Source of the DNA: Mytilus californianus
Taxonomy: Eukaryota
Assembly: GCF_021869535.1 (NCBI RefSeq)
Contig: NW_026262668.1
Coordinates: 24,428,001-24,492,000 of the forward strand
Reading direction: 5' to 3'
Length of the DNA: 64,000 nt
Part shown: one piece after another, positions 945 to 62,586 of the stretch
How the letters are laid out: every line of letters begins with the position of its first letter
How positions within the stretch are numbered: the first letter of the stretch is position 1
Made by a program: the position numbers and the translations under genes
Notes under the pieces: model-generated
What the model saw: the letters and a program-made list of their open reading frames with translations, nothing else
What the model was told of the DNA's origin: nothing
Databases searched by the model: none

Positions 945-1110
945 TTCTGTTACACCACTGTCCCAAGTTTGGGGAGGGTTGGGCGCCAGTAATTATGTTT
1001 AACCCCGCAACATTTGCTAGGCGCGTGTACCAAGTCAGGAGTCTGTAAATGTTCTCGTTTGAATTGTTTTACATTTGTTATTTCGGGGTCTTTTATATTT
1101 TGCGTATGCA
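945..1110 (+). mobile_element. Degenerate short retroelement (subfamily D) with a decayed twister-like core
   Basis: GGGGAGGGTTGGGCGCC...TTTAACCCCGC...TACCAAGTCAGG core shared with many copies in the window. Confidence 0.65.
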
Positions 1111-1513: not shown

Positions 1514-3375
1514 AGGGACCGTTCAATATTTATCAGAGGGATGGGCCGGTGCATTCTTAATATTGTTTAATTTAAAATGTTGATGCCCATCCTTTTAAAT
1601 TCTACAAAAAAGTGCTTGCCCATCTCAAAAATTGTATAAAAAAGAGCTTGCCCCTCTAAAACTTAAAGACAATCAATAATGATTTAGGTTCTTTTTCAAT
1701 TCTAATGTTTGCATGTAACTTTATTTCTGGAAATCAAAGAATAGACTTTGGTGTAACACAAAATACAAAATGTGCTTGTTAATTCCATATATTGTTGTTT
1801 AAATCCAGTATGAATATACATGTATAGATTTGATTTTATCTGAAGTGCAGCCTGATACAATATACATATAAACATCACAATTACATCTCAATACATAAGT
1901 AATAGTATACTATATCAGCAAGCCTTTAATAAAGGCTTAAGAAGTGCTAACAATATTCATACAAGTCATAAACATATGAAGAAATATGAACCATACTATT
2001 AAATGTGCTAAGTTTATATTTATTGTGAAATCTGGGGTCTTTTTCAATTTGAAACAGTTTAGTGTATCTCTTTTTAAGTCTTTGTTCTATTAAATAATTG
2101 CATAAGTTGTAGTTTTTAATGTTAAAAGCAGAATTATCATTTAAAAGTAGCAATGTCTGTAATATATCATACCTTGTATAGTCATATATATTTGGAAAAC
2201 ATTAATAAGCAGGAGTTGTTTCCCCTTTTCAAGAGCAACAATGATTGATTCACATCTACATCATTAAAATCTGTATATTTGTTATTAATAGTGCTAGGTT
2301 TAGTCTGCAAATATTGTTTCATCTATCAATATCAAATTGAATTCAGAACATAGTTTAGACAAGACTAAAACATGTGAAACTCATCAATGATCTTTTCTTA
2401 AAATGACAGTAAATTATATTGCTAATTAATAAATTATCTCCCCTTTCTAACAGTTTTGTATTGAATTCAGATCCCTTTTTACATTTTTACTCAAGGGAGG
2501 TATACATAATCTGCATATCTTTTAATTGCATCACAAAAACTCATTTAATAAAACCTTTCGGGTTTCCTTTAATACAGATACCATAATTATATCCTGCTTG
2601 GTTCTTCAAATATAATAGAAATACTTGTTCACTGTAAGACTGGTGTTTGGAATATTTTTGGAACAAAATATTGCTAAATAAATTCATCCTATATCTGTCT
2701 TTAAGATAAATATAGAATATGTTCCATGCTATAACATTATCTATCATTGAAACATGTAATAAAGGACAGCTTATAGTATTATTTAAAGTAGAACAAATAA
2801 TTTACATTTTTTTAGATACATGTGCTCTTGAAGTTATACTGTCATTTTGAAATTAGTGAATATAAGTCAGTACGCAAATCTATTTCTGTAGTAATTTTAT
2901 ATTTTTAAGCATTGATCAGAAGTTATATACTGAATATATCAAACAAGTATAATTTTACAATCTTTAATACATAGGAGATAACTCAATTCATGTGAAAATT
3001 GTTGGTTGATCAAAGTTTTAAAATGTTGTGTTTTCATGTTACATGATTAAATAAGGTGCCATTAAATTATTTCTAAAATGTTGTGTTTTCATGTAACATG
3101 ATTTAATTGTTTCTAAAATGTTGTGTAATCATGTTACATGATTTAATACTTTACAATCATTACTTTTGTTTTCATCGTGTTTGTGTGCCTGCAAAAGAAA
3201 TTTCCTACACACCGACAAAATTTATAGCAATTTTTTTCCCTGTTAAATAAGTTCTGGCCCATGCACTATACATATTAAAAAAAGATCTCGCCCATCCAAA
3301 TATTTACACAAAAAAGTGCTTGCCCCGCCCCATTTTGTACCGGCCCATCCATCTGATAAATAATGAACGGTCCCT
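1514..3375. mobile_element. 1.86-kb non-autonomous TIR DNA transposon, TA-flanked
   Basis: 37-bp TIRs AGGGACCGTTCA(A/T)TATTTATCAGA(G/T)GGATGGGCCGGT (35/37 match) with TA on both sides (1512-1513, 3376-3377). No transposase ORF. Absent from the paralogous introns. Confidence 0.85.
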
Positions 3376-3677
3376 TAGTACATCCTTAAAAACAAATCCG
3401 AGAAAAGTAAGGCTTTGACCATTGAAACATCCTCTCCTAAGGATCCGCAGCTGCTTTGAATTTCTGTCTCGTCTTCCCAACTTTTCAGGATAAAGGGAAC
3501 CGATGACCAAATTTGCATTTTAATGGAACAAAAGCAGTTTTTGTTTTGCATTTATGAATTTTAAAATGGTGCAAATAACAAAACGTGTGTACTTCCCCTT
3601 AAGTAGTAATCCACGAATCTCACATCCCTTTAATACAATATATCACCAGGTTAAACTTAGTTAGAAATGTTTTTCAG

Positions 3678-3776
3678 AGAAACTTTCAGCTTACTTGAAA
3701 AGTGATAGATTTAAAGAAGTCGTAAGTAATGAAACCAAAGAAGACATTAAAGCAATAGCACAGCAAGCTTTGAATG
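3678..3776 (+). CDS. C1qDC copy 1 exon 2 (coiled coil, EKLSAYLKSDRFKEVVSNETKEDIKAIAQQALN)
   Basis: ttttcag acceptor, gtaag donor, 99 nt, phase 1-1, open frame, conserved in four copies. Confidence 0.85.
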
Positions 3777-3904
3777 GTAAGGTATCTTATGTGATAATCA
3801 ATTGTTTACCAAACGTACCACAAGATAACCTTTAGTATGACTTGTTAATTTTTCACACTTTTTCAATTCTTGAAATGTGCTATCTGACATTTTTTGGGAG
3901 CCGA

Positions 3905-4250
3905 GACATAACGGTTATTTGTATTGTGGTCCTGTCATGTGATGTTGTCGTTTTGGTGTTGTGTTTGACGTTGCCATTAAAGCGGGAGGTTAGGCATGCC
4001 ACAAAACCAGGTTCAACCCACCATTTTTTTCTTAAAATGTCCTGTACCAAGTCAGGAAAATGGCCATTGTTATATTATAGTTCGTTTCTGTGTGTCTTAC
4101 ATTTTTAATGTTGTGTTTTTGTTGTGTCGTTGTTCTCCTCTTATATTTGATGCGTTTCCCTCAGTTTTAGTTTGTAACCCGGATTTGTTTTTATCTCTAT
4201 CGATTTATGAGTTTCGAACAGCGGTATACTACTGTTGCCTTTATTTATAA
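3905..4250 (+). mobile_element. Short retroelement subfamily A (3' end ...CAGCGGTATACTACTGTTGCCTTTATTT) carrying a twister-like core
   Basis: Near-identical 3' part occurs inverted at 29045-29208 and a related copy at 62320-62586; absent from the paralogous intron 2. Confidence 0.75.
3973..4064 (+). ncRNA. Putative type-P5 twister ribozyme (subfamily A)
   Basis: P5 GCCAUU/AAUGGC, L1 GA-GGU, C|AA site at 4014/4015, T2 AC/GU, P3 CAUUUU/AAAAUG, P4 CCUG/CAGG, L4 UACCAAGU, T1 ACC/GGU. P2 is weak. Confidence 0.7.
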
Positions 4251-5139
4251 CATTTTACGACTCATTATGCAAATGTTTGCACAACCCGCACGAGCTACAG
4301 AAATGAAAGATTTTGTTTAACTATCCCCTTGCATATATTTTTTGTAACGACGGCAATGTCAAGGTTCTTTTTTGCTTTTCAGTCTTTCTCATTACCATTT
4401 TCCTTTTATAATATATGTAAACGTAAGCGTGTAATAAACAGATAATATATTATATGGCTTTTTCATATAACATCCGTATCAACCTGCAATATAATCATAA
4501 GAGCTCTGCTCGATGGATTATATTAGTTGACGGTTGATACGTTGTGTGATATTGCATATAATATGCACTTTATTATAAATCTTAAGTAGATGTTTTTCGT
4601 ATAAGTCGTGCCATGCCGTAATACAGATTAGGGGTTTGATAAAGCCTTTGCAACCTTGACTGATATCGATATCATCTCAGATGGCTGATGCAGCACTATT
4701 GCCATTGACTGTATTGCACATTCATTTTACTTGTATTTACTTCTCAATATATAATAACATATCATATTGCAGTAGTGCAGTTTTAGCTTCAAATTAGTGA
4801 CGTCATCAGTGATAAAAAATATTTTAAACAGTGTTCCAGCTTTGCTATATACAATAAAGGGTTCTTGCATGAATTTTTGTGAATATTATTCATCGTAGAC
4901 TTTATATTACACTCGCAAGTTAGTGAGATATTAAAATTAACTAAATTCAGTCTTAAATTGTAATATTTGTATGACGACGAAGATTTTCAACATTTTGAAT
5001 GAGAAGATAATAAATTATTAGTCTATGTTTAATTTTCTCTAGTCACATTTAAAGTCCCGTATGTGAGAATGGCAATATTAACGGTCCTGTACTCCTTTTT
5101 TTTTCATTTTTACATTTTCTTTTTTCTCTCTATTTAAAG

Positions 5140-6683: not shown

Positions 6684-7599
6684 TCTAACTTTCCATCGAC
6701 ATCATTTTCATCGTATGTTTATGTAGACTTTGGCGGTATGGTTATAAATCAAAGGGCACATGTATTTTATTAAACCTCTTAAAATGAAGATAGGGACAAC
6801 GAATGTAAGCCTTTTTTAAATGATAAAAGTAAAAGAATGTCTCATTACTTGGTCAAAATTTTACTATATTTTATTACAAATAAGACATAATGAGTGAAAC
6901 TTTTATTCCGCCTGCAACATTTAATATAAAGTTGTATTGTTTCCAGCTTTTAAGACAATAACATAAATTCATAAAGCTAACAAGTTTAGAGGTTGATCTT
7001 AAATGTTTTTATGTGTCAACTTGTGTTTTTTTTTTTGAATTATCTATTATACCGTTATTAGAGAGTAAAATTGCTTCGTCTGTACTGATTTTTGTTGTAT
7101 GTTGTGTTGTTGGCCAACTGATCGAGATTAAACACAGGTAACGTTTAAAATTAAAAAAAAATGAATTAACCTCACTGCATATGCATGTGCCTGCCCCAAG
7201 TCAGGAACATCGTCAGTTGTTATTTGATGTCGTATTTTATTTTTTAATTGGAGAAATTTGTGTTAAAGGTATTTCTGTTATTTGAATAACAACTTTCATA
7301 TCCCTGGAATATTTAATGCTAAACAAATTGTAAAGACATCTGTCTTATGTTGAAGACTGTTTGTTGCCGTCTATTTTTTTATCCGTTGGGGGGATGTCCC
7401 ATTGACGCTAAAACCTTATCCTTTTATTCACCTTTACAAATACCTGAACATGTTTAGCATGTTGACAAAACAAATATATATATATAGATCTATCTGTAGA
7501 ATTTCGTATATTTTTCAAGACACTCTGAATTGTTAGTTCTGTCTTTTCCTCTATATTTCAATGTTTCTTTTAACTTCCTGCTACAAAATTTAGGTTGCT

Positions 7600-19171: not shown

Positions 19172-20754
19172 CGAATACATATGTTCAAACTCTTTTAGGT
19201 CATTTTTTAGTAGCAACAAACAAAAAAGCTATGTCAATTGGACATGCTTTGATACTATATCTGCCCTTGAATTTTTACTTGATAACATTTTTGTTCGCTT
19301 TGGAGATTCCGTATATCGCCAAGTTATCCGAATTCCAATGGGGACTAACTGTGCACCACTTATTGCGGACCTGTTTTTGTATTGTTATGAGTTACAATTT
19401 ATGACTAAAATCAGCAAAGACCCATCGAAACAACATCTGATACAAAAATTTAACAATACTTTTAGATATTTGGATGATATATTGGCTCTCAATAATGACG
19501 ACTTCAGTATGTATACTTAAGAAATTTATCCTGTTGAACTTACTTTAAATAAAGCTAATACTAACAATGACCACTGTCCTTTCCTCGATCTTGATATCTA
19601 TATATTAACGGGAAGCCTAATACAAAAATTTATGATAAAAGAGATGATTTTTCATTTCCTATCGTTAATTATCCATTTTTAGATGGTGACGTTCCCTTGT
19701 CACCATCTTATGGTGTTTATATATCTCAACTTGTACGATTCGCTCGTGTATGTAACAACGTATTAGATTTTAGCGAGAGAAATTTATGTATTACTGAAAA
19801 ATTATTACACCAGGGTTTTCGATATCATAAACTAGTCAAAACATTTACTAAATTTTATCATCGGTATAAGGACATCATTCGTAAATATAACTCAACATGC
19901 AGACATCTTATACGTTCGGGTATTTCACATCCAATCTTTTATGGTAATATTCTTTACAAAGCACAAAAATGTCAGTATTCACCTCAAAAGCTAACAAAAC
20001 CTTTAAACAGACTTATTAAGAAGGGATATAGTTACGATACTGTTGTCAGGTCATTAAAGATTGCATATTTTGGCTTTAATATTGATTCACTTATAGGGTC
20101 TTTGCATCGGAATTAAATATATTTATTCTAAAACCTCTTGCTGGCATGACACGGGTTATGTTCTTCTCATATATTTTATGATGGTATAATACTAAACCCC
20201 TAACAGGAGGGATTGTGCCTGATATTCATATGATGAAGACATAATCTTTCAATCAGTTTAATTGAGGTCTGGATCTGGCATGTCAGTAACTGCTAGTAGT
20301 CTGTTGTTATTTATGTATTATTGTCATTTTGTTTATTTTCTTTTGTTTCCCATTCTGACATCGGACTCGGACTTCTCTTAAACTGAGTTTTACTGTGCGT
20401 ACTGTTGTACGTTTGTTTTTTCTACATTGGCTAGAGGTATATGGGAGGGTTGAGATCTCAAAAAACATGTTTAACCCCGCCGCATTTTTGCGCCTGTCCC
20501 AAGTCAGGAGCCTCTGGCCTTTGTTAGTCTTGTATCATTTTTTATTTTAGTTTCTTGTGTATAATTTGGAGTTTAGTATGACGTCCATTATCACTGAACT
20601 AGTATACATATTTGTTAAGGGGCCAGCTGAAGGACGCCTCCGGGTGCGGGAGTTTCTCGCTGCACTGAAGACCCATTGGTGGCCTTCGGCTGTTGTCTCT
20701 GCTCTATGGTCGGGTTGTCGTCTCTTTGACACATTCCCCATTTCCATTCTCAAT
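19172..20754 (+). mobile_element. Young 5'-truncated Penelope-like retroelement (RT C-terminal half + 3' UTR)
   Basis: RT motifs IPMGTNCAP, YLDD (19467-19478) and TKIYDKRDDF; one stop (19518-19520) and one frameshift (~19603). 10-bp TSD TTTATCATAG (19162-19171, 20755-20764). Empty site at ~32181. Confidence 0.9.
20429..20519 (+). ncRNA. Putative type-P5 twister ribozyme (subfamily B) in the RT element 3' region
   Basis: P5 GGCUAGAGGU/GCCUCUGGCC, GA-GGG, U|AA at 20472/20473, T2 GC/GU, P3 CGCA/UGCG, P4 CCUG/CAGG, L4 UCCCAAGU. P2 has only 2 Watson-Crick pairs in this copy. Confidence 0.75.
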
Positions 20755-21798
20755 TTTATCATAGGTTTGTATCAGCAATGTCTCGGACAAGTTCGAAAAT
20801 CAGTGCCGGTCAATTATTTTTAATAGAGTTATGCCCTTTGAAATAATAATATTATGGAAAATTGCATTGTAAGCGCTTTCACGGGTACAATTTTTGCCAG
20901 ATTTTTATCAAATTTTTATTAAAGGTTTAATCAGCAATTTCTTGGACAAGTTCAAAAATCAATACTGATGAAACATTTTTAAAAGAGTTATGACCCTTGG
21001 AAATATTAATTATATCTGAAATTGCATTGCATTTGCTCTGAAGCCTTCATTTCTCTAAAATATTTATTAAAAAATTAAAGAAATTTTTAGTTTTTGCTAA
21101 TGGGCAGTTAAAATATGTGCAACGCGGGAGACATTGGAACTCCGTTCTTTTATTTTATTTTTCATAAATCAGGTCTTTGGTTTTCACGTTTGAATCGTTT
21201 TACATTTTGTCAAGTCGGAGCCTGTTACAGCTAACTATACGGTATGGGTTTTGCTCATTGTTGAATGCCGTAAAGGAACCTGTAGTTGCTTACGTCCACG
21301 TCTTTTGGTCACGGATAGAAAGTTGTCTCATTGGCAATCATACCACATCTCATTATGTTTACATGGATTGATTTAAGACTTGTCATATGATTTTTCACTT
21401 TAATATCCATAATTGAAGGGGTGTCATGTCCTTCAGATTTCTTCTTAGTTAACTTTTGTTTTTGCTGTTTCATTGTTGTTTCCTTACTTTCTTATGGAGT
21501 TATATTTAATACCAATCAATGACCACTCGAGATTTATGAATTTTGACACTTTTAGATAGCAAGAGGTTATGGGTTTTTAATATTTCTACTTATTTCAATT
21601 CTTTTTTATTTCAGATTATTTATATTTAACTTATTTCGGTCATTCAGAATTGTAAAAAAACAACTTGCAGCATAATGACGTAATAGTCGTTTCGCCTTGA
21701 CTTCGTATTTATATTTCCTGACAATTGGTTATGTGCAAATATTTAGTTTTATTCATTTCGTACTTATCATATTGTTATATGCTTATCGGTTTAACAAT

Positions 21799-21982: not shown

Positions 21983-24900
21983 GTAATTTAAGAATTGTAT
22001 ATATTTATTTAGAGGATACTAAACATGCATTCATCAGTTTTTTTATGATAAATTTATTTTAAAATCTCAAAAATATTGACAGTAAGGGCCGTTTGAGAAC
22101 TTAATCTTACGACATATCTGATAATTTCAATTGTTCCATTATGAACATTCCATTTCTATGTATAGTACTATTTTCAAATGCATGATGAGTATGGACATTG
22201 AGAATATATCCCCCAGTCGATACCACATTCCAGGGCTGGCGTTTCCTATCATGATTTCCATCATAGAGAGTTTCTGCTATCAAGGAAGTTATTGTATATT
22301 TGAAGTCATCTTTTCATGTATACATCAAAAGTATGCGGTCATAATTTGAACGACCGTTATGGGAAATGTTTGTTTGTCACAAACGGCCGTAGATATGTTC
22401 CATTTATCTTATTTTTATAGTGCGCAGTCAAAATTTATGCAGGCTATAATAAATTCTATGCTTTTATAATACCAATCTTTATAGGATTAGGTCTAAACTA
22501 AAATAACCCCAATATAAACACGAATGAAGTGAAGCCGCTGTTCCGGGATTGTAATCAATAGTAGCAATTACTCCAACGAGAACACAATCAATATTGCGAC
22601 GAATAAAAAATTAACAATTAACATTGATTATTAAAACCCAACACGAGTTTATTTATAAAATTTGAAATATACAAAATCTACAAAATGTACAAAACAAAGG
22701 CTTGGCATTAAAAAAAACAAATAAGAGAAAAGTAAGGATCTGACCATTGGAACCTCTGTTGCTTTGAATATCTGTCTCGTCTTCTTCTTCTTTCGTTTGG
22801 CCCTTTTCCGATTACTTTTTCAACATCAAGCACTCGTTACATTCGACAAAATCATGATTTTGAAAGGGAAACTAAGTGATGCAAGCTAACAAGTTGTGAA
22901 TCATGAGGTACTATAATACCCGAAATACTATCATATTCCATGTTTGCCCGATAGAAGTTATTATTTGTTTTTCGCCAATTTTATGACAAATGGATTTTTT
23001 CGAAACGAATAATGCTTGCCTATAATTATTATTACAGTCATGATAGTACATAAAGTAGAGTATTAATTAATGCTGATTTTATTGGTTTATGGCATCCGCA
23101 TTCTTGGGAAGATAGTAAAGTACTATCATCAGTGCAATTAACAAGTGGTTACTGAAAGATAGTGCAAAGCCAAATTTCAGCTAATTAATAACCATTCTAT
23201 CATACTTAAATATCAATCAGTACACTCCAACAGATTTTAACATGACCTTGTCACAATGTGCAATACAAAAACTTAATTTAAGATGATTTTATTGATCAAG
23301 TTTGTCTATTAAACACCGTAATAAAAATCTTTAAATATTGTTTTAATCGGTAGTAACATTGATTTTGTTTTTTTAATAAAATACATCATGACTAAATATA
23401 TTGCTATATATGTACAGCTAGGACTACTCATAATCCTACATCCGGTAGAGACTGTTTTTTTATATTTTGGCATTGCACAAGATCAGGTGTTTCTCAGACT
23501 GTTTATGACGTTATACTAAATCCGTTGGATGTATACTTATTGATACTTTAGTCTGGGCGAACAGGATTTATTTATTAGTTGTAATCGACTTTCAGCTACT
23601 GCGAGTACTCTTATATTGGTGCGCTGTGTCAAGAGTTTTTTTTTAAGCAAGTTGCTATTTAGTGTTTCGTAACGAGTTAAGCAATTTGGAACTAATTTTA
23701 ACAGTTTGTTCTTATGTTGTGATGTTACACCACTGTCCCAGGTTTGGGAAGGGTTGTGCGCTCACAAACATTATCAACCCCGCTATGTTCTTCTTGTGTC
23801 TGTCCCAAGTCATAGCTTGTAATTCATGGGTTGTCGTTGGTTCTTGTCTATCATATTTGTTTTTTTCGTAAATTGCATTATTATGAATTAGGGCATTAGT
23901 TTCTCGTTTGAATTGTTTTAAATTTTTCATGAAGAGGCCTTTTAAAGCTACCCATATAGTATGTGTTTTGTTCATTTTTGAAGGCCATACGATGACCTAT
24001 AATTGCTTATGTCGACGTCGTTTGAACTTAGGTGGATAGTTGTCTCATTGGCAATCTCACTACATCTGCTTCTTTTTATTCGTATCCGTATGTTGACCTC
24101 AATAGATATCGTTTGGTTGAAATGTGTTGAGACAACATGTCATGAATATTTATGGAATTAAATTAAGAAAGCCATTTGAGGAAAAAATGTAAGAAAAAAT
24201 ATTGCTTCATTTTTTATCTTTTATGTTCATATATTTTTTATCATTAGTGTTAAAATCTTTAAAGCGAAGTTTAAAGGCTTGTTGGATTTTGCTCAGTTCT
24301 TTTTACCTCCCAAGCGAAAGTTTCCTTAAACCATAAGTCAAAAGACCGTAATTCTGCAGTATGTTAGGCTTACATATATAGTTGGATTAGGATGGATAAA
24401 AGGAATCAATGCACACATCTGCATTTTAATGGAACAAAAATAGTGTTTGGTTTGCATTTAGGAATTTTAGAGTGATGAAAATAACAAAACGTTTGTATTT
24501 CCCCTTAAGAAGTAATCAACGTAACCCACATCCCTTTAATACAATTAACTATAGTATGTTGTGCGCAACCTCAATTATTTTATAGAGACTGTATAATAAC
24601 CAGGTTATAGTTAGTTAGCAATGTTTTTCAGAGAAACTTTCAGTTTATTTGAAAAGTGAGAGATTTAAAGAAGTTGTAAGCAATGAAACCAAAGAAGACA
24701 TGAAAGCAATAGCACATCAAGCTTTGAATGGTGAGGTATATTATGTGTAATCAATTGTAAATTAAACATACCACAAGGTAACCTATTCCAAACTGCTTTT
24801 AGTATGACCCGTGATTTTGTTTTTCACGTCTTAAAGTTTTGTTTTAAAATGTACTTGCCATGTAATTGGTATAAACCAAGCGCCAACATAATCAAATTCC

Positions 24901-26997: not shown

Positions 26998-27365
26998 CCC
27001 ACATAAATAAAAATAAGGAAATGTTGTATGATTGCCAATGAGACAACTCTCCACCAGAGACCAAATTACAAAGAAGTTAACAACTATAGGTCACCGTATG
27101 GCCTTTAGCAATGAACAAAACCCAAACCGCTTAGCCAGCTATAAAAGCCCCCGAAATGACAAATGTAAAACAATCCAAACAAAAAACTAACGGCCTGATT
27201 CATGTACAACACAATGAACGAAAAACAAATATGATATACATCAACAAACGACAACCATTGAATTACAGGCTCCGGACTTGGGACAGGCACATGCAGAATG
27301 TGGTGGGGATTTAAACATGTTTGCAGGTGCCCAACCCTCCCCTTACCTAGAACAGTGGTGTAACA
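26998..27365 (-). mobile_element. Subfamily D short retroelement, near full-length, degenerate twister core at 27266-27349
   Basis: Reverse complement of the core plus tail; absent from the flank of copy 1. Confidence 0.75.
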
Positions 27366-27829
27366 TATGCATGCTCTGTATGCATGTGTTTGCCCCAAGT
27401 CAGGAAAATATCGTCAGGGGTTATTTGTTGTCGTATCTTATTGTTTTTTTTTGTAATTTGGAGAATTTGTGTTGATGGCAGATCTTTGCTAATTCTGTTT
27501 ATTAAAGCACAACTTTCATATCCTTCGAACAATTAGAGCTTCACATATTGTAGACATCTGTCTAAGAGCGAAGACTGTGTCTTGCCGTCTAGATGTCATT
27601 TGAATTTTTACTCGTTGGTTGCTATCTCGTTGACGCTAACCCCCTTATCCTTGTTGTTTATCGTGTTGACAAAAAAATAAAACAAAAATAGTATCTATAG
27701 ATCTATCCGTAGAATTTCTGATATTTTTCAAGGCACTTTAAAAAATCTTTTTACTGTCTTTTTCTGTATATTTCAATGTTTCTATTAACTTATTTTCCTG
27801 CTACACAATTAAGGTTTTTTTTCAGTTTA

Positions 27830-32585: not shown

Positions 32586-35500
32586 ATTTTATTTTTCTTA
32601 AATCAGGTCTTTGGTTTTCACGTTTGAATCGTTTTACATTTTGTCAAGTCGGAGCCTGTTAAAGTTAACTATACGGTATGGGGTTTGCTCATTGTTGAAT
32701 GCCGTAAAGGAACCTGTAGTTGCTTACATCCACGTCTTTTGGTCACGGATGAATAGTTGTCTCATTGGCAATCATACCACATCTCATTATGTTTACGTGG
32801 AGTGATTTAAGACTTGTCATATGATTTTTCACTTTAATATCCATAATTGAAGGGGTGTCATGTCCTTTACATTTCTTCTTAGTTAACTTTTGTTTTCACT
32901 GTTTCATTGTCGTCTCCTTACTTTCTCATGAGGTTATATTTAATACCAATCAATGACCACTCGAGATTTATGAATGTTATTCTTATTTAAAATTTTGACA
33001 ATTTTATATAGCAGGAGGTTATGGGTTTTTAATATTTCTACTATTTCAATTCTTTTTTATTTCAGATTATTTATATGTTACTTATTTCGGTCATTCAGAA
33101 TTGTAAAAAAAAAAAACTTGCAGCATAATGACGTAATAGTCGTTTCGCCTTGACTTCGTATTTATATATCCTGACAATTGGTTATGTGCAAATAACCGAT
33201 TGTTGTTATTAATAATCTTGAACGTCCCTTTTAGTTTTATTCATTTCATACTCATCATATTGTTATATGCTTATCGGTTTAACAATATGAAGACTATTCT
33301 TATCGGAGTTGTTCTGGTCTTGAAAGTTGTATGGTCGCTGGAAACGTAAGAGGGAAAACTACCAATACTAAAATGAAACGGAATACCGTTAAATATTGAT
33401 ATAGATGTTTCTGAGTTTAACAGAAGATTTGCCGATATTGTTAGCAAAGGCATACCCGTAGAAATATCAGGTAATTTAAGAATTGTATATACATTTGTAT
33501 TTATTTTGATGATACTTAATCAGTTTGTTTATGATAAATATATTTTAAAATCTCAAAATATTGACAGTAAGGGCCGTTTGAGAAATTACCCGTACGACAT
33601 ATGTGATATTTTCAATTGTTTCATTTCGTTTCTATGTATAGCAATATTTCCTATGCATGAGGAGTATATGCATTGAGAATATATCCCCAAGTGGATACCA
33701 CATTCCAGGGTTGCATTTCCTATTATGATTTCCATCATAGAGGGTTTCTGCTAACACGGAAGCTTTAGTAAATTAGAAGTCATCTTTTCAGGTAAACGTT
33801 TAAAGGATGCGGCCATGAACGACCGTTATGGAAAATGTTTGTGTGTCAAATATTCCATTTACTTTATTTTTGTATAGTGCCTTGTCAAAATCTAGGCTGG
33901 CTATCGTAAATTCTATGCTTTTATAATGCCAATCATTATAGGTAAAATAACCCCGATATAAACATGAATGAAGTGAAGCCGCTGTTCCGGGATTGTAAGC
34001 ACTAGTAGCCATTACTTCAACGAAAACACAGTCAATATTGCGATGAATAAAAATTTAAAACTAACATCGATTACCAAAACCCAACACGAGTGTATTCATA
34101 AAATTTGAAATATAAAAAATCTACAAATCAAATGTTTGGCCTAAAAAAAACAAATTTGAGAAAAGTAAGTATCTGATCATTGGAACCTCCTCGCGTATAA
34201 ATCATCCGCTGCTTTTAATTTCTGTCTCGTCTTCTTCTATTTTCATTTTGCCTTTTCTGATTACTTTTTCAACATCAAGCACTCGTTGAATTCGATTTTT
34301 AAAGGGAAACTAAGTGATGCAAGCTATCAAGTTGTGAATCATGAGGTACTATCATCCCCGAAATAATAGTATCTTCCATGTTTGTCCGGTAGAAGTTATC
34401 ATCATCATGTCTGTTATTCAGTATCGTTTTTCGACTTCCTAAAGTAATGTTTTTCACAAATCTTATTACAAATTGATTTATATCGAAATAGAATCATGCT
34501 TGCCTTTACTATTGCAGTCATGGTAATACATCAAGGATAATATTAATAAAAGATGATTTTATCGTTTTGGGCATCCGCATTCTTGGGAAGATAGTAAAGT
34601 ACTATTATCAGTGCATTACCAGTGGTTAGTAAATGATAGTGCAAAACCAAATTTCAATAGTTAATAACCATGTTCTATCATATTTGAATATCATCAGCAA
34701 ACTGCAGCGGATTTTAGAATGACCTTGTCACAATGTGCAATGCTACAATTTAAATTAAGATGATTTTATCGATCAAGGTTGTCTATTTAACACCGTAACA
34801 AAAATCTTTAAATATTGTTTTGATCGGCAGTAACGTTAATTTTGTTTTTTGAATAAAAAATCAACATAACTAAATATATATTGCTATATATGTACAGCTA
34901 GGAGTACTCATAATCCTACATCCTTTCGAGACTGTTTTCTTATATTTTGGCATTGCACAAGGTCACGTGTTTCGCAGACTGTCTATGACGTCATTACACT
35001 AAATCTGTTGGATGTATACGGATTGATACTTTAGTCTGGGAGAACATTTATTAGTTGTAATCAGCTTTGAACTAGGCTAAGCCTTCAGCAACTGCTAGTA
35101 CTCTTATATCGGTGCGTTGTATCAAGTGTTTTTATTTTTATGCAAGTTGTTATTTTATGCTTCGTAACGAGTTAAGCCATTTGGAACTATTTTTTACAGT
35201 TTCTTCTTATGTTGTGCTGTTACACCACTGTCCCAGGTTAGGGGAGTGTGATCGTTCACAAACATTATCAACCCCGCTATAGTTTCTTGTGTCTGTCCAA
35301 AGTCATAAGCTTGTAATTCGGTCGTTGGTTCATGGCTATCATGTTTGTTTTCCGTAAATTGTATAATTGTGAATTAGGCCGTTAGTTTTCCATTTGAAAC
35401 GTTTTAAATTTTTCATGTAGAGGCCTTTTAAAGCTGTCTATACAGTATGTATTTTGCTCATTTTTCAAGGCCAAACGATGAAATATAATTTTATATCGAC

Positions 35501-36948: not shown

Positions 36949-37189
36949 GTAGACTTATTTAATGATTTCTGTTTTTGTTTCTTATCGGTGTTTCGAAAAA
37001 GGTAAAATAACAAAAAAATTCCAAGGAAAATTCAAAACGGAAAGTCCCTTAACAAATGTCAAAATCAATAGCTTAAACACAACAAACGAATGGAAAACAA
37101 CTGTCATATTCCTGCCTTGGTACAGACATTTCCTCAAGTATATAGTTTTTATTATTTTAAAAGATTACAATCATTTATGAAATAATATT

Positions 37190-43637: not shown

Positions 43638-45794
43638 TCCAGTATCACAGTTCTTTTCGGACAATTTCCTGCAGGAAACATAATGTGATTTGCTTTAGGA
43701 TATTTCTGTCTCCTTGTTTTGCGTTTTTGAAGGAATAATGAATCATAGTTACTGTAAACATGTCAATCTAGATGACTGAAAAAAGATAATGATAAAATAA
43801 AAGTTCGATAAAAACCCAATACAAAACTGTCATTCGAACCAAACAACAAACCAGCAGTGAAACTGGATGAAAGTCACAACGAAATTGGCGGTAAACCGTT
43901 AACCTCGAACACATGTTTACAACCCGATCAAACTCCCTGTGTTCCTTAGGAATTTCTAAAGTTTAATTTCTAACATATTGAAAAATTTATTTACTTCATT
44001 CTTTTTTTATTATTATTATTATTACCTTGATATTTTATCCAAAAAAAATATTATAATCTATAACGGCAATTTGTATTGAAACATTTCGCTGCCAGTCATT
44101 CGAAGTGTGGTTAGTCACTTTTCCCCAAAAAATGCTGAATCTATTCAGAATGTTTTGTTTTGCATAAGAAAATCAGAGCTGCTTATACCCTGCAAATCGA
44201 CTGAGCTGATCTAAAATGGCTGCAATAGAATCGTCTGAATAGTAATGATGCAGGTGAAATTTCTGAAAACAATCAAAAAGATTGAGTGATGGTTAATATT
44301 ATGAATGTGTACGGGTGATGGAACATATTTTTCATGTAGGTGTTGTAGTTGCTATAGGTGGAGATCAAAACCCATAAATTTTCACAGCTTTGTAATATTT
44401 TACCTTAAGTTTAATGTTATGAGAACCATTTATATCCCGAATTGAACATGTATCTCCTTTCTATATATATGCCGATTTTTAACCAATGTTTAAAGTCTTG
44501 TAGTGACACATGACGTTCCTGGAATCACCTATTACTACACATAGCACTCTGATTTTCTAAAACTCATTAATAACGTTGAAAAGCATCTCATCTACCCTAA
44601 ACTTGTAATGCAAATTATAAACAAATAATTTGGGCTCAGAATGGTTAAAATGTTTTTCTCGCTCAGCAAAGTTTCATCCATGCAAATTTATTTGCTAGTT
44701 TTAGTAAATAATAGCACCAAAAGCACTATGTCTTGTCAGAGTAGGTCTACTGATCTGAATTGGCGGTGTGACACTTAATCATATTGCATCACCGGACGCC
44801 TCGAACTATTCAAAGAAGGATAACTCTGATTCCATTATTTATTACTTATATCAAAATCTACTTTAAAATGAAAACAATAAGTTATTTGGTGTGTCCGGAC
44901 CGCTTTTCTGGATTTACATTAAGAGATTTTAACAGTTTAAGTATGATTGCAAACATTATTATAGAAATATTAGGGTTAGAAAAAAAATATTTCTTTTGCT
45001 CCTATTTCCCAATTTAGTTTTCCCTGATCTTGACAACTTAATCAGTTTCCTTCGGATATGTTTTAGTTCACTATATTTGTCTCTATACGTTTAGGCATTA
45101 TGTTTGTCTTCCTATAGAGGCTTTTGAAGCCTTATTTTCTTATGTGACTGATACACTTTAAAAAGTACTAATAACGTTAGCCTCTCATGACAATAGATTA
45201 GTGTTTATATCCAATTGTAAAATGGGTCTAATTTTACAAAAACAACTACTTCAGATGTAAGTCTCTCTTGAACATACTCTTTCTGACTTGATGTTAGAGA
45301 GGCAGTTAAGCTAAAACATTGACGATTACTATCAGTGGAATGTGTATGTCCACGGATTGGTTTTAAGCTCAAATTGATGTGTGAAATCTTTATGTATTTG
45401 CAGGTAAAAGTTAAGTAAAAGATGCCAAGGATGTAATACAAAAAATCATTAGACAATGAAAAAGAAATTGTACATATCTGCAATGTCCAATGCTTGTTAA
45501 AAGGCCTGTTAAAAGGCCTGTTATTCAAATTTAACATATACATGCAGCACATATACCAAATTTTTGTTTTCTTTTTTGGACAATTATTTTAGTTATTCAA
45601 GTAAAATTAATGAAGTTTGTTTCATATATCTACCACAATATCAATCAGCTAATCTCATAACGGTTTTGTTTCTGGTGTACGAGTGTCATTATTCTTATAA
45701 ATTTGCAGTATGTGTCCCTCATTTCGGAAAAAAAAATACAAATGGAAAAGCAAAAATAGTTTGATTATGAATAATGGGAGAAATTATATACTTT

Positions 45795-46108
45795 GGTTGA
45801 GATCTCACAAAACATGTTTAACCCGCCGCATTTTTGCGCCTGTCCCAAGTCAGGAGCCTCTGGCCTTTGTTAGTCTTTGTATGTTTTTTTTAATTTTTAG
45901 TTCATTTATATGTTTTGGAGTTTATTGTCACGTCCATTTTCACTGAACTAGTACACAATTTTATTTAGGGGCCAGCTGAGGACCACCTCCGGGTGCGAGA
46001 TTTTCTCGCTGCATTGAAGACTCATTGGTGGCCTTCGGATGTTGTCTGCTCTTTGGTCGGGTTGTTGTCTCTTTGACATATTCCCCATTTCCATTCTCAA
46101 TTTTATTT
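45795..46108 (+). mobile_element. 3'-terminal fragment of the subfamily B RT element
   Basis: Matches 20448-20757; the twister is truncated upstream of the first palindrome. Confidence 0.85.
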
Positions 46109-46520: not shown

Positions 46521-46981
46521 AATAAATTCAGTGTTACTGACATAACCATATGCCCTGGGAAATTCAATAAAAGGGTCATTTAAGGGTCACTACCGCTTTT
46601 TGATTTTTTAAGAGAAAAAGTTGAAAATATTATTCAAATGGTGTATTTTTTTCAATTTTAGATAATGTAAAGAGATTATGTCTTTGTCTTCTAAACATCT
46701 TCGGGCATGGTTGAGAATGTCAATCAAGTTGTGTTTTGTAAGGTCTTTGCAAAATGTAGCCATTTTGAAATTACAATTTACGAAAGTAAATGAACAAACT
46801 TGCTATAAGGATGAACATTTAGTTCCCATCGATATACGGATCACTTGACGTTATATTTAATTGAATATTTAATTTTTATTATTCATATTACTGGATGTAT
46901 ATTTTTGTTAAAACAATTACTATCTTTGTGAAGGTAAAATTTTATCAACGTTTCTTCGCATAACATCAGTAGTATCTTATA

Positions 46982-47390
46982 TAGATATAGGAAGATGTGG
47001 TATGAGTGCCAATGAGACAACTCCCCATCCAAGTTGCAATTTATAAAAGTAAACCATTATAGGTCAAGGTACGGCCTTCAACACGGAGCATTGGCTCACA
47101 CCGAACAGCAAGCTATAAAGGGCCCCATAAAATTACTAGTGTAAAACCATTCAAACGGAAAAACCAACGGTCTAATCTATATAAAAACGAGAAACAAGAA
47201 ACACGTATGAACTACATAAACAGACGACAACTACTGTAATCAGATTCCTGACTTAGGACAGGTGCAAACATTTGCAGTGGGATTAAACGTTTTAATGGTA
47301 CCAAACCTTCTCCCTTTTCTGAAACAATAGTATAACATCACAACATAGAAAACACACTATAAAATATCAATTGGAAAGCTTAACTCAATC
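46982..47390 (-). mobile_element. Short retroelement subfamily C with an intact twister-like core
   Basis: Tail GTTGTCTCATTGGCACTCATACCACATCTT; related + strand fragment at 52990-53255. Confidence 0.8.
47240..47322 (-). ncRNA. Putative type-P5 twister ribozyme (subfamily C), best-preserved copy
   Basis: P5 UCAGA/UCUGA, P2 UCCC/GGGA, L1 GA-AGG, U|AA at 47285/47284, T2 AC/GU, P3 UGCAA/UUGCA, P4 CCUG/CAGG, L4 UCCUAAGU, T1 CCU/AGG. Confidence 0.82.
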
Positions 47391-49918
47391 AAAAAACGTA
47401 AATTAACACACAGTAGAATGTATACAACAACGTCAAAACTTAAGGACAAGGGACTTATCTTTAACAGCTTTTTTAATTTATGTTCCGAAGAGTAATAGTA
47501 CTTCTGTGTAAGGATATATCAGCCTTATTTGTCGACGATTGTTCAGATCGTGAAAACACGTTATTCCCCTTTGACTTATTCATAGAATATAGATTTAGGC
47601 TTCGTTCATCGTAAATAAATATTGTACATCAAGAAAATAATTCGATGCTTTGTCTTATGCGGATAAGGGATTGGAGGTATACTCATTTATTTTGAAGACT
47701 CACCATTTTGATGTTTGCTCTTTTATTATCTGTTTTAACATGTTCAGGCATTATATTTTTTAATATCCAGTTTGTTTGTCAGTTGCCAAATACTCGCAAT
47801 TACAAATGTAAATATGAAATTCTGAATTTATATTAAAATTAATAATCTTTAAATGTTTGAATATCCTAACCTTGTTACAATTTATATAACATCAGCAGAC
47901 ATTTGTATATTACATACCACAAATTGTGTGATATTATAGAAAATAAATTATTCTGGAGTTTGTGCAGGATTTGACTTTTATACTTCGAACTTATGAACTG
48001 TTTAATTATTGTTAAGTGGTGACATTTACAGGCATATTAATGATGAAAACACGATAAACAATTGGTTCTCAAATTAACAGCAAAGAAAAAAAATAGGACA
48101 TTCATTTATAATGAATTTTGTCATGCACAATTTAAAAATATAATCTCATACCATGAGCACTTTTTCCGTAATTGTAAATAAATGCTGAATTTGTCGGAAT
48201 CTCTATCTTGAGTTTTCTTTATCCATTAGTTGGATTTCTTTTTATTGATTTTCTTTATACAAAGCTTTAATAACTTTATAAACAATTTTACTTGTTTCCC
48301 TAGAAATAGTTTCTTTTTGAAATGCGAAATCTACCACTGCGCATATTTCAGAAAAGTAGACTAGAATTTGTAAACAGTTTTGCCTATTTTGAAAGATTTG
48401 TTTGTTTATCTAATATTTTCTAACATCAAATAACCTCACTTTTTGAAAAGTAAATGTCTGAAATGCTATTTTCACCAGAATTTTTGCCGTTTGGTCTACT
48501 TTTGTTTTTGTATTTATCATCTGAAAACTGAAAGAAACATGACCAAACATTTGACGGAGGAAGATAGATTTGTGACTCCTGGTCGAATAGGGGAAAGACG
48601 AAACCATGCTTTCATTTTATCACGTCTGTATTGTACAGTTCTCCAACTTTGTTTGATTCCATTCATTCGACACTTGAAAATTTGCATAGATAAGCCGTTT
48701 GATTTACGACTTTCGTATTGGATTTTTGCATAATTAGGTCCGTCCCAGTCTTTGTGGATTTAGATCTATCAGATGTTTCTGTTGATATCAGTGTTAGCTT
48801 TGAACCATTAGGGGCTTTTTCTAATTAATATTGATTTTGAGAGACAGATTTTGAGAGTTAATTGACAAAAGAAATCAACCGTCATGTGTATATTTATCTT
48901 TAACAAACTTTAAGGTTAATCTCTTGGGATAAAAATAAGAATGACACTTTCTTAATGGTTATCAGATGTAAAGTCTTGTAAATCGCAATTGAAAATTGGA
49001 AACTTTATAATTTCTTAATAATTAAACGAATAATATCTTCTTACTTTCCATTATACTGGAATTAAGTTCATTCCACTTAAAAAAGATTTTTTTTTAATGG
49101 AAAAACATATTTTAAAACAAAAGATAAAGTGAATACAAGGAACAGAACAAAATTATTAATCATTACTTTAAAAAAAACTAAAACTAAATTGAGTGACTCC
49201 TGTTAAATTGAAGATAAAAGACACTCAGGGTAAAACATAAAAATTCCAAAAACAAACAATAGATCAGTGACCTGGAAAACGTTCATTGATATCTCAGACG
49301 TCCAAACAATTGCAGGAACATTGGCCATACACTAGATTAATACAAATAAGTTAACAACACTGCCAATAAATAGGAAAGTCAGAGTCGTCATGTTTGTTAT
49401 AATTTTTTGGTATGAACATGGAAGTCCTTACCTATCTTGACGATATTGTACTCCCATGGTATGAAGATTGACATGAGAAGTATTTTTTTTAAAGACGATG
49501 ATCACATTTAATGCTTAATTTAGTAAGAGTATATTAAGGTGCATGAATTTCAATGGTTTATTTATTTAGTTTTTAATCAGGTTCATTTAGAGACATTTTT
49601 ATATGTCGTCATTGTATCGATGGATACATTTCCTTGGAGTTCGGTGTTTTTGTTATTTTACTTTTCATTATTATTCGTGGATTTCAAGGGTATAAGTAAA
49701 CTACGAATTCAAATGTTCAACGAAGTACACATTTGCTATAGATCTGTATGCAAATCCACGAAAACAAATATCCACGGAACTACAATTTTCCTCAGTCCAC
49801 GACAATTGGTATTGGTATCAACGAACATAAATGAATCCAAAGTACATGGAGTAGTGTCTTTCTGGAAGTTTAGTCATAACTAAATGAACTAAATCAGATG
49901 AAAGAGGGGCACAGTTAA

Positions 49919-51939: not shown

Positions 51940-52290
51940 TTATCCCCAGGTTAGGGGCAGGGTTGAGCGCTCACGAACATGTTTAACGCCGCCATATTCT
52001 TTATGTGCCTGTCCCAAGTCAGGAGCCTGTAGTTCAGTGGTTGTCGATGGTTCATGTCTGTCATATTTGTTTTTCGTAATTTTTTTTTTGTTATAAATTA
52101 AGCCGTTAGTTGTCTCTATTGGATTGTTTCACATTTTTCATGTCGGGGCCTTTTATAGCCGACTATACGGTATGGGTTTTTCTCATGTTGAAGGCCGTAC
52201 GGTTGCCTATAATTGCTTACATTAACTTCATTTGAACTTTGGTTGATAGTTGTCTCATTGGCAAACATACCACATCTCCTTATTTTTATA
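51940..52290 (+). mobile_element. Subfamily D short retroelement; twister core 51947-52029 with the catalytic G mutated
   Basis: P5 CAGGU/GCCUG, palindromes UGAGCGCUCA and AACAUGUU; GA>CA at 51958 and a P2 mismatch. Confidence 0.8.
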
Positions 52291-52989: not shown

Positions 52990-53255
52990 AGACAGCCATG
53001 CAGGAGCCTGTTGTTCAGTTGTTGTCGTTCGTTGGTGTGATTCATAGGTGTTTCTCGTTTTTATATAGATTAGACCGTTGGTTTTCCTCCTTAAATTGTT
53101 TTACACTAGTCATTTTGGGGCCCTTTATAGCTTGCTGTTCAGTGTGAGCCAAGGCCCCGTGTTGAAGGCCGTACTTTGACCTATAATTGTTAACTTTTTA
53201 TACATTGTAACTTAGATGGAGAGTTGTCTCATTGGCACTCATACCACATCTTTTT
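52990..53255 (+). mobile_element. Subfamily C-like 3' fragment
   Basis: Matches the reverse complement of ~46990-47240. Confidence 0.7.
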
Positions 53256-56200
53256 ATTTAAATAAAAAGTACTATTTTTTTTAAGATGATTTGAATTGCA
53301 GATTATTGTCACGCCTGTACATAAGAAGATATGATATGACTGCCAATGAGACAACTCTCCGCCAGACACTAAATGACGTGGGAGTTAGCAACTATTTACA
53401 GTCTTCTAAATAAAAAAAATCCCTACAGGACCAATCACATCGTCTGAAAATAGATCAATTGTAATTTTACAAATGATTCAAGATTCAAATACATAGCAAA
53501 CAATAAGGCTACGAATGTCCAAGTTCTTAATTAAACTTAGAAAACACTAAATATTGTCGGATGGTCTATTTTGGCGTCCATACATTTGAGAAACCTATAA
53601 TAAGTGATCAATCATTTTCCAATGTTTGCTGACGATCAAAACATATGATTGACGTTACAACAAATAACTTAAATGAACTATCACGAGATCTCCACAATCA
53701 CGTATGCAAATTTAATTAATTATGTTAACCAACACGAGGAAAATAAATCAAATTTCAAACCAGTGGACTATGTGACAGTTCATTTTTCTGCTTCACGTAC
53801 ATTTTGATATTTATTCCAAATTTTGGACAAGTTTCAACTTGTGAGTAAGACAGTATTCCAAAAAAAAACTCTTATTACAATCAGGAATACATGAAATTAA
53901 ATTACGTGTATAATTGGTCATTGATCAAATCATCTAGTGCTCGCAGTTAAATAATGTTTAGAAAAAAAAATAAAATGCATATTGTGGACTTCTTTCTCCT
54001 TGTTTGAAACAAAATATAAATAAATCAATTTTTCATCCATTTTGAGAGTTTAGTGCTTTTTTTTCTTTGCTTCGAAAACGCATGGCAAAATATACTTTAT
54101 TAAACTGTTTAATATCTTTCAAACGTTCTCCAAATCGCGTTATTTGCACGAATAAAAGAAAATGTGGATTTTACTTCACTGAGACAGCAACCAAACGGTA
54201 CAAAAATCAAATATTTTCAGATAAAAGGCACTTTTTAATTTGAGTATGAATCGCCGATTCAAATTTTCAGTTTTATGCAGAGCGCATGATGGACTGAGTG
54301 CAGGTATATATTTATACGAGTCCTTGTTTCTTAATGTTAATTCGAATGAGATAAAATATACTCTCTCAATTATTCTATTTTACTTAATATAGTTGGTGCG
54401 ACACAACAATTAAATCAGTTAACAAAAGTCTCCGAAAATTTAGTCGTTTTCTGTTGGTATATGCTTTCAAACATATTATAGTCATGCTGACCCGTGTTGT
54501 GATGACATGCAGTATCTAGGTTTATGTAAAACGAAAAAAACAAACAAAAAAAACAACAAGACTTATTTTAGATGGTTTCCTCCTTCATTCCAGTTTTTTC
54601 AATATATTTTGGCATATTAGTTTTTTCCCAATGACGGCAAGGAGTGTGTTACTTTTGTTAATATTTTTTTATCAGTTTCAGCATCTTGAATTTAACCACG
54701 TGATTCCTGGAGGGTGGAATATTTTACATTAAATACAATTTCAGGTAGATCTGTTTCATTAACTATTAGTGTATTGGACGAGTACCTCTATATATCTTTA
54801 AGGTAATACATATAGAATAGAAAATCATTAATGGCCTCCAATTGAATATTTATGAACTGTTTATCTAGCAATAGTAACGGGGCTCATGTTTCGTGTATAC
54901 AATGAAGAATTAACTTTATGTCCATTAAATGGTGAGAAAATCTCCAAATAACTGCCTGTAGGTTAACATCACGTTTATGTATCGTTGTAAACGAGATATC
55001 TTTATACAAACTACACGTTATAAATCACTATTCAGTTAAACAAGTAGTAAAGGCGTTTTGATGAGATTATGTGATCATTTATGTTTGCAATTCTTTTACG
55101 AGCTATAAAAATCTCATTATAAGAGGCATCAATTTGTCGATTTTTGTATGATACAAAAGTTAATTGGACTATCTGGAACATAAATCGAATACACCGTCTG
55201 TAATCACATTTATGTCAATAAAAAGATAGACGAAGGTGGTCCGTATAACTATGTTTTGGTAATAAATTTAAAATGAAGCTGCTGTAAAAATAGTTTAAGA
55301 GAATTAGTCTCTGATCGAAAAAAAATATTTGGTTATTCTCTGTGTAATTTCAGGATTGTATTATCTTTATACTTTCAGGATCTTGTTCTCTGTAGGGATT
55401 TTTTTCTCTGTATGTTTGGTTTTTATTAAAATTATACAGATATGCAAGTCTAGCTGTTACTAGTTTTCTTTTTAATCAAACCCCCAAAAATGCAGAGAGG
55501 TCATTCCTTACCAAAATCAAAATTAATATGTTTGGTCTTTTAGATATATAATAGAATTACAAAAACATGTCAAAATTGTCTTCAGCTCTAATGTTTAGTA
55601 TATTTTATTATATTATATAAGTATCTATATTATATAGATAAATGTACAATTTTAGAAATATTTTATATTATATATTATTTACAACCAAGCTTCATTCGAC
55701 ATCAACTTTCTGATTTTGAACCAAAATCAGCGGAAATTGGCCATACCTTTTCTTGAATTTAATTTGAGTCAAATTTGAATGTATACTATTTTATGACACA
55801 AAACTAAATACTCTATGTGTATCATACATCTTAATAATTGTTTTGTCGCCTTCTTGCATTATCTATTTGGAAAAACTAAATATATTACCAGGAAATCATT
55901 TCCCTTGTTTTGAACAAAGTTAGAAATACATGTTTACGATCCTGTAACGTGTTTTCATTCACGGGGGATGCTTTCATTGTAAATTGTTGATCATACAAAA
56001 ATAATGATTTTAAATTAACCGTTGTAAAAATTTATGACAACATTCTAAAAATTTATTTCAAAGAAAAAAGAATTGTAGGCGTTCCTAATTTAGTGCAATT
56101 AGAATATTTATACTTTTCAAATAAAAGCAACTTCTTCTATTTATATCGGTTTTTCACCTTAAATAAATAGTGACAAACCAGACGTGTATATATGTCTCTG

Positions 56201-62319: not shown

Positions 62320-62586
62320 TAAATAAAGGCAACAATAGTATATCGCTGTTCAATAGTCATAATTCGATTAAGCAAAACCAAATCCGGATAACAAACTAAA
62401 ACCGAGGGAAACACATCAACTGTAAGAAGAAAACAACGGAACAACAGAAACACTGAACAACAACAAAAGCAAACGCCAACATACATAGAAACAGACTGTG
62501 TGATAACAACTGCCATATTCCTGACTTGGTACAGGACATTTTAAGAGAAAATGGTGAATTTGAACCTGGTTTTATGGCTAGCCAAC
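62320..62586 (-). mobile_element. Subfamily A-related element with the 3' half of the twister core (62512-62586)
   Basis: GGCUAGCC, AACCAGGUU, CAA, ACC, AUUUU/AAAAU, CCUG-UACCAAGU-CAGG; lacks the GA-GGU strand. Confidence 0.75.

Follow-up and report, generated by a model that had tools for sequence, protein, structure and literature searches.

A putative, conditionally active twister-class motif opened at P5 in the 3' tails of Naiad-type Penelope-like elements of Mytilus californianus

Introduction

A short repeated core at positions 47240-47322 (minus strand) of a 64,000-nucleotide stretch of Mytilus californianus DNA (NCBI RefSeq assembly GCF_021869535.1, contig NW_026262668.1, positions 24,428,001 to 24,492,000; the whole stretch is called the window below) raises the question of whether an abundant repeat holds a ribozyme of the twister class, what kind of mobile element carries it and whether its RNA is cut. 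A preliminary description of the window had read the core as a type-P5 twister common to several subfamilies of short retroelements.

The question touches on an older one. Penelope-like elements form an ancient retroelement branch whose sister is telomerase, and to our knowledge the reason why most of them carry hammerhead ribozymes has never been settled. Dimers of these hammerheads were reportedly the subject of a study in 2017. The biological role of Penelope-like hammerheads has been described as unresolved, and the Naiads, a clade of these elements, have been reported to be without canonical hammerheads (PMC8557442).

Architecture of the flagged core and its copies

Read 5' to 3' on the minus strand, the flagged core runs UCAGA, AAA, GGGA, GA, AGG, 21 nt, U-AA (with the predicted cut between the U and the first A), UCCC and AC, and continues with the hairpin UGCAA-AUGU-UUGCA, CCUG, the loop UCCUAAGU, CAGG, AA and UCUGA. 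This order of elements is that of a twister ribozyme opened at P5. P5 is formed by UCAGA (47322-47318) and UCUGA (47244-47240), P2 by GGGA (47314-47311) and UCCC (47282-47279), P3 by UGCAA and UUGCA (47276-47263) and P4 by CCUG (47262-47259) and CAGG (47250-47247), P4 and L4 together occupying 47262-47247. The T1 pseudoknot joins AGG (47308-47306) to CCU (47257-47255) and the T2 pseudoknot joins AC (47278-47277) to GU (47252-47251), all on the minus strand. The G-A of L1 lies at 47310-47309, the palindromes UGGUACCA and AAACGUUU lie inside 47305-47285, and the AA follows at 47284-47283. All coordinates and pairings that had been proposed for this copy were confirmed, and its RNAfold minimum-energy fold recovered P5, P2, P3 and P4. 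The features of the locus are as follows.

47240..47322, minus strand: flagged twister-like core, lineage B3 (sequence parse, Rfam alignment, RNAfold)
47284..47285, minus strand: predicted scissile bond between U47285 and A47284, placed by positional homology only (Rfam alignment, parse)
46977..47426, minus strand: whole B3-type tail copy holding the flagged core (blastn against the L003 copy), from ~-164 to +285, counted from the first base of P4

The Rfam model Twister-P5 (RF02684) aligned at full length with 47247-47314(-), at 21.3 bits and E 0.012 in a 161-nt scan. In three cores, scoring 21.3, 23.0 and 18.3 bits, the alignment spans all 58 model positions and every conserved unpaired nucleotide fits, in the flagged copy the G-A, UAA and U-CC-AAG among them. 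The scores of 18-23 bits remain far under the gathering threshold of 37.6. Whole-window Rfam scans at the gathering threshold and at E<=10 returned no twister match; the match appears only in scans of ~130-160 nt, and its absence from large scans carries little weight. Since whole-window scans are empty and a short scan matches, the filters hide this family. A search of the organism's own genome with RF02684 gave no match among the 79 of 35,978 candidates that were scored, and the core of L017, a related locus from another assembly, gave no Rfam twister match at all.

With type-P5 twisters (RF02684) the core shares the order P5a, P2b, G-A, T1, (P1), U-AA, P2a, T2, P3, P4, P5b, the P4 loop U-NNN-AAG-N, both pseudoknots and the conserved unpaired nucleotides. 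It differs from them in having self-complementary tracts instead of a P1 hairpin, in a T2 that is usually G.U/A-U plus C-G rather than G-C/C-G, in the scores given above and in an activity that is predicted.

The window holds about 14 further copies of the P5-open architecture (P2-P5, both pseudoknots, U-AA, L1 G-A and L4 U-NNN-AAG). Intact, decayed and truncated copies include the following.

20256..20760, plus strand: subfamily A tail; core 20429-20519, predicted cut between 20472 and 20473, 3' end 20759/20760
3973..4063, plus strand: lineage C core; T1 GGU/ACC, P5 GCCAUU/AAUGGC, P2 of only 2 bp
955..1046, plus strand: lineage B core, decayed, L4 and P4 mutated
27266..27352, minus strand: lineage B core, head to head with the truncated copy 27379-27591(+)
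27379..27591, plus strand: copy beginning ~10 nt before P4, inverted neighbour of 27266..27352(-)
7180-7373, plus strand: copy resembling 27379..27591
51945..52035, plus strand: lineage B core, L1 G-A mutated to C-A, P2 mismatch
23730..23815, plus strand: decayed lineage B core, with a duplicate at 35225-35308(+)
45794..46105, plus strand: subfamily A copy truncated just after T1, start UUGAGAUC
62320..62585, minus strand: lineage C copy truncated after T1
36989..37140, minus strand: lineage C' copy truncated inside P3

The T1 variants noticed earlier are present, namely CCC/GGG at 20498/20447 and at 52013 and ACC/GGU at 4046/3988. For the copy at 20441 the pairing CCC/GGG stands, but the reading of the window copy has to be corrected to AUGG-GA-GGG, against GGGG-GA-GGG in sister copies and in >85% of RNA reads. 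L004, one such sister of the subfamily A element in the window, has the sequence GGGG-GA-GGG ... UAA-CCCC-GC and reaches 23.0 bits.

The window also carries a duplication whose period is ~11.5 kb (18011~29731, 20791~32216, 23799~35292); it doubles one decayed twister copy and the sequence that flanks the subfamily A insertion. At 53217-53360 lies a long inverted repeat whose arms are identical to the final ~35 nt of tails of type B (GGAGAGTTGTCTCATTGGCA...). Plant miRNA models match it weakly, and it may have arisen from two tails fused at their ends.

With up to 2 mismatches allowed, the window contains 10 instances of the P4/L4 string CCTGTNNNAAGTCAGG where 0.6 would be expected, and exact matches of the string number 70,314 in the 1.65-Gb genome against 20 for a reversed control. 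Nine 10-kb pieces of the same genome together with the window yielded ~30 copies, which fall into the six lineages A, B, B2, B3, C and C'. Subfamily A has at least 40 copies that share 97-98% identity across 335 nt, and a 24-mer of this subfamily that begins at the predicted cleavage site and reaches into P4 is found without mismatch 8,634 times genome-wide. The family, which had been proposed to be large and recurrently active, is indeed very large and was recently active, and subfamily A is young.

Conservation of the fold

Copies for comparison were chosen with a descriptor of the unpaired anchors only, which found 21 matches versus 4 in reversed sequence, and three more B-lineage copies were added through a local parse. 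Ten lineage representatives were compared, of which this genome supplied six and other assemblies four. They keep standard pairs at 120 of 130 places in P2, T1, T2 and P4 (34/40 in P2, 29/30 in T1, 18/20 in T2, 39/40 in P4); moving the partner 1-3 nt out of register leaves no more than 66 of the 130 pairs. Changes on both sides that keep the pair were found at 7 of the 13 positions, among them P2 positions 2 and 4 and P4 positions 1 and 3, and they affect all four of these helices. T1 takes the pair types GC, AU, UA and CG across lineages, and in P3 and P5 the sequence is wholly different from one lineage to another, complementarity being retained.

Over all six helices 224 pairs were counted, compared with 160.6 +/- 9.5 when partners were permuted among lineages, and 0/5000 permutations reached the observed value. 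Taken singly, the helices were equalled in 0/5000 (P2), 1/5000 (T1) and 16/5000 (P4) permutations; T2, reached in 409/5000, is weak when taken alone. The combination of MAFFT and RNAalifold recovered P4 alone, with both-sides changes at 3/4 pairs, because the MAFFT alignment of three lineages is out of register by one base in P2b/T1. Departures from the scheme include lineages C and C', with 2 P2 pairs only, and lineage N2, with U.U in T1. The unpaired U-AA or C-AA, L1 G-A and L4 AAG are present in 10/10 representatives, the same residues having served as selection anchors, and the RT proteins of the lineages are only ~45-60% identical to the RT remnant of the window.

Therefore the fold, including the pseudoknot T1, is maintained by selection: P2, P3, P4, P5, T1 and T2, together with the unpaired nucleotides of the twister, have been kept across ten lineages through compensatory change. 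The earlier proposal of a P5-open architecture common to several subfamilies with compensatory changes is upheld and extends to six lineages in this genome. The constancy of P4 as CCUG/CAGG, which had also been proposed, holds within this genome only; in relatives from other assemblies the helix covaries.

Carrier elements

Naiads are marked by an N-terminal endonuclease, DKA instead of DKG, and a C-terminal RT (PMC8557442). Upstream of the subfamily A twister the window contains two features that bear on the identity of the carrier.

19230..20113, plus strand: RT ORF remnant, 5'-truncated and frameshifted, with the Penelope-like RT motifs GTNCAPLIADLFL and RYLDDIL, ending at a stop
20168..20232, plus strand: SECIS-like hairpin lying after the RT stop and before the twister (SECIS_1 29.8 bits, threshold 35)

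Only the C-terminal RT is present in the remnant 19230..20113(+), and no endonuclease follows its stop. A second subfamily A copy from the same genome (L005) has the same RT upstream, and the 5' parts of subfamily A tails run on into SECIS and RT sequence. The layout is RT ORF, SECIS-like hairpin, twister and then ~290 nt to the element end. Tail copies reach ~125-240 nt before P4 and ~135-285 nt after it, with the twister 60-240 nt inside them; as they extend on both sides of P4, the motif is internal and not a head. Most genomic copies, the flagged one included, are 5'-truncated tails of ~300-500 bp. ARAGORN found no tRNA-like sequence in the whole window, and hence no small-RNA head of the SINE type. 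Pfam assigned no family to 14 ORF pieces, a protein atlas search gave no usable match, and hammerhead families were absent from the Rfam matches of the window (to E 10) and of seven related loci (to E 5).

A protein search with the RT piece of the window returned 112 relatives, and nine contigs from other assemblies (L010-L018) were examined. In L012, L013, L015 and L016 the ORF holds, in order, a Cys-rich finger, a GIY-YIG-like block ending YWIKTL...PLGLN, PIDKAANN or ADKASNN, LPKLHK, the RT motifs and a stop, so that the translations of all four place GIY-YIG N-terminal to the RT and have DKA for DKG. The twister architecture was found in eight of the nine foreign loci, the copy in L012 having a degenerate 5' half. 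It lies ~110-1000 nt after the ORF in L010, L012, L013, L014, L017 and L018; in L011 and L015 it precedes the ORFs. P4 is there ACCG/CGGU or GCCG/CGGC, P2 is GGGU/GCCC, GUGG/CCAC or GAGU/ACUC, T1 is GGC/GCC and T2 is CC/GG, and the P3 and P5 strings are unrelated to those of the window. The remaining locus, L016, is Naiad-like, with an N-terminal endonuclease, ADKASNN and a C-terminal RT piece 48% identical to the RT piece of the window; its positions 3163-3947 (784 nt after the stop) contain neither a twister-like motif nor a SECIS match. The twister motif may not be universal in the Naiad clade.

Partial tandem (pseudo-LTR) arrangements and inverted 5'-truncated neighbours, likewise typical of Naiads, were seen as well: tandem tails lie 512 nt apart in L014, and inverted truncated pairs occur in L013, at 27287/27389 of the window and at 9534/9735 of L006. 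An RT remnant at 46686-46850 (-) sits just downstream of the 3' end of the flagged tail in the same orientation, and in a few RNA reads elsewhere the end of the tail continues into the RT region (20756 to 19921); both observations fit partial tandem arrangements.

Hairpins resembling SECIS_1, at 25-33 bits (threshold 35), were noticed at 20168-20232 of the window and in L010 (3737-3803), L013 (3094-3159), L017 (1539-1602) and L011 (339-409). In L010, L013 and L017 these sub-threshold hairpins separate the stop from the twister, and in L011 the hairpin adjoins the upstream tail copy. Their recurrence suggests that some of the elements may be selenoprotein-coding Naiads, as in clams.

Our reading of the motifs and the homology between loci assign the carriers to the 3' tails of putative Naiad-type Penelope-like elements. 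The view of them as independent short retroelements was not borne out: the motif is internal, there is no tRNA-like head, subfamily A follows directly after an RT remnant and a SECIS-like hairpin, and homologous ORFs elsewhere combine the hallmarks of Naiads with the same motif. With the published Naiads, including the selenoprotein families of clams (PMC8557442), the elements share the GIY-YIG-like N-terminus, DKA, an RT at the C-terminus, a SECIS a short way past the stop, truncated copies in tandem or inverted positions and copy numbers of tens of thousands in bivalves. They differ in the motif itself, as that description contains no ribozyme of any class, nor the word 'twister'.

The P1 region and tests of cleavage

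No P1 helix is present in any lineage. The 20-25 nt between T1 and the predicted site, treated by Rfam as a local end, hold two self-complementary tracts. The first occurs as GAGAUCUC, GGGAUCCC, GGCGCC, GGUACC, GGCAUGCC, GGGCCC or UGGAUCCA, and the second, which ends at the U before the predicted cut, as AAACAUGUUU, AAACUAGUUU, AAACCGGUUU or AAACGUUU. In the ten lineages the minimum free energy of the P1 region as a monomer is 0 to -2 kcal/mol, against -10.8 to -18.2 kcal/mol for the homodimer, and in most lineages the homodimer energy beats nearly all shuffles. A hairpin would need no self-complementary centre, and pairing of two copies is therefore the natural reading; each tract is complementary to itself and not to the other, so that a simple dimer geometry does not follow. 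The replacement of P1 by palindromes suggests that two copies pair. Twisters deprived of P1 have been found to go on cleaving, slowly and inefficiently (PMC8501958), and in the short-stem hammerheads of animal retrozymes it is the dimer, rather than the monomer, that cleaves (PMC7761336).

Four raw RNA-seq runs were mapped on 19900-20800. The subfamily A element is transcribed in both orientations, with a depth of ~160-600 over the core, and most RNA reads carry the intact canonical GGGG-GA-GGG core. Across the predicted site (20472 to 20473) the depth is continuous, and no pile-up of molecule ends reaching 1/5 of the local depth was found in the core. The last ~55 nt of the tail (20706-20760) have 3-10 times the RNA-seq depth of the rest, with reads entering from several upstream sequences; this terminal block is common to more families than the twister-bearing body.

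Insertion starts were counted genome-wide as subfamily A copies in which none of the three upstream bases agrees with the family sequence. Counting from the first base of P4, 15 of the 8,634 copies (0.17%) begin at -20, the predicted site, 6 at -33, a control position, and 21 at -43, and 73 begin at -10, inside P3, more than at the predicted site; the count of 39 at -52 represents small indel variants and not junctions. With so few starts at the predicted site, insertions from cut RNA are rare. All truncated copies share their 3' end (+265, ~290 nt past the site), and the template RNA was therefore uncut there. The 5' ends of truncated copies cluster ~10 nt before P4, in the 5' strand of P3, also at 7180, 27379 and 37140(-) of the window and at 4303(-) of L011.

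The RNA-seq coverage and the start counts lend no support to routine cutting and argue against it. They are compatible with a ribozyme inactive in monomeric form and also with one that has lost the ability to cut.

Discussion

We consider it probable, with room for doubt, that these sequences are a conditionally active motif of the twister class, a circular permutation opened at P5 and built into the 3' tails of Naiad Penelope-like elements. The RNA would cleave at U-AA by the usual chemistry of twisters, using the guanine of L1 and the A after the cut. With P1 replaced by self-complementary tracts, cleavage of a single copy would probably be poor and would become efficient only where two copies pair; the two could belong to one tandem or pseudo-LTR transcript, or to separate transcripts. 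Its job would then be the conditional processing of multi-copy transcripts and not the definition of an end for every insertion. The unpaired residues of the catalytic site have been kept in all ten lineages despite divergence of the RT, which argues for catalysis, bearing in mind that they also served as selection anchors. The RNA-seq data, the absence of P1 and the low scores in Rfam speak against constitutive activity.

A dependence of cleavage on pairing would parallel the dimer-dependent type I hammerheads of animal retrozymes. In those, as apparently here, one helix is too short or palindromic to close in the monomer and cleavage takes place in the dimer (PMC7761336), and the hammerheads of retrozymes and of canonical Penelope-like elements resemble the present motif in being small, self-cleaving (here putatively) and situated near a 3' end or terminal repeat; they belong to a different class of ribozyme. 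The stricter form of this idea, in which the Naiad twister would be active only when two copies pair through their two palindromes and would be the counterpart of the dimeric Penelope-like hammerheads, is one that we advance tentatively and would not expect to hold in full.

The same observations can be read as a selected twister fold that no longer cuts and has become a structured module, either a recognition or priming site for the RT or a signal for pairing or packaging through the palindromes. RNA-seq coverage unbroken at the predicted site, the very few insertions beginning there, the uncut template RNA of truncated copies, the lack of P1 in all lineages and the sub-threshold Rfam scores all agree with a loss of cutting. 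A structural role, however, would not need every one of the residues that matter only to catalysis or to the packing of the active site, and these are found in 10 of 10 lineages; as they were also selection anchors, the weight of this point rests on their presence in every lineage sampled. On balance we regard a purely structural module as unlikely, if by no means negligible. That the resemblance to twisters is a chance by-product of a conserved repeat whose structure was never selected would suit the descent of all copies from related repeats and the failure of Rfam to call any at its threshold, yet none of 5000 partner permutations attains the observed pairing, slid registers lose half of the pairs, P2, T1, T2 and P4 have changed on both sides with P3 and P5 wholly replaced, and the anchor descriptor matched 21 times as against 4 in reversed sequence; we attach next to no probability to it.

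A further possibility concerns the carrier, which could be an independent SINE-like element moved by LINEs, with the twister processing its 5' end as in Perere-3/RTE or in the LP-SINEs of molluscs. Variants of the twister are indeed known at the 5' ends of RTE-type LINEs (PMC8501958, PMC7761336), mollusc SINEs with a 68-bp head derived from LINEs have been described (PMC4758252), and the 5' boundaries are fairly constant in lineages B and C. Against this, the motif is P5-open and internal and does not stand at the first base, 0.17% of subfamily A copies start at the predicted site, subfamily A and five foreign lineages sit after a Penelope-like RT ORF, and head-to-head and tandem arrangements are typical of Penelope-like elements, so that we hold this reading to be very improbable. 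SINE and LP-SINE identities were rejected on the internal position of the motif, the want of a tRNA-like head and the RT ORF upstream. The twisters of Perere-3 (RTE) in Schistosoma mansoni (PMC8501958) are nevertheless instructive relatives: they too belong to an abundant non-LTR retroelement, have a weak or external P1 and share the string GAGGG-UUGG after P2b. They are of type P1, stand at the first base of the element, cleave in vitro and in cells, and their insertions start at the cut, whereas the motif described here is P5-open, lies in a Penelope-like 3' tail and almost never gives rise to insertions from its predicted site.

As to novelty, twisters had already been predicted in gastropods and bivalves (PMC11662667). 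The view of the preliminary description, which knew of no account of such a family of twister-bearing retroelements in a mollusc, holds within the literature searched: searches on twisters with Penelope-like elements, SINEs or bivalves, and on the P4/L4 core string, found no paper linking twisters to Naiads, and twisters go unmentioned in a 2026 preprint about retrozymes and Penelope-like elements.

The meaning of a conditionally active twister in Naiad tails would lie in the biology of Penelope-like elements. The Naiads, dominant in the genomes of bivalves, have stood as the counter-example, a success without a ribozyme. If their tails carry a twister, this counter-example falls away, and there is more reason to think a ribozyme step essential. 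The family, overlooked entirely by the Rfam twister models with default filters, would with its ~70,000 P4/L4 cores be among the largest twister families of any genome; it would also provide the first case of a twister with self-complementary tracts in the place of P1, and would offer a handle on pair-dependent catalysis. If the stricter form set out above is true, one and the same step in the life cycle of Penelope-like elements would have recruited two unrelated classes of ribozyme, and this step would then be both essential and open to experiment.
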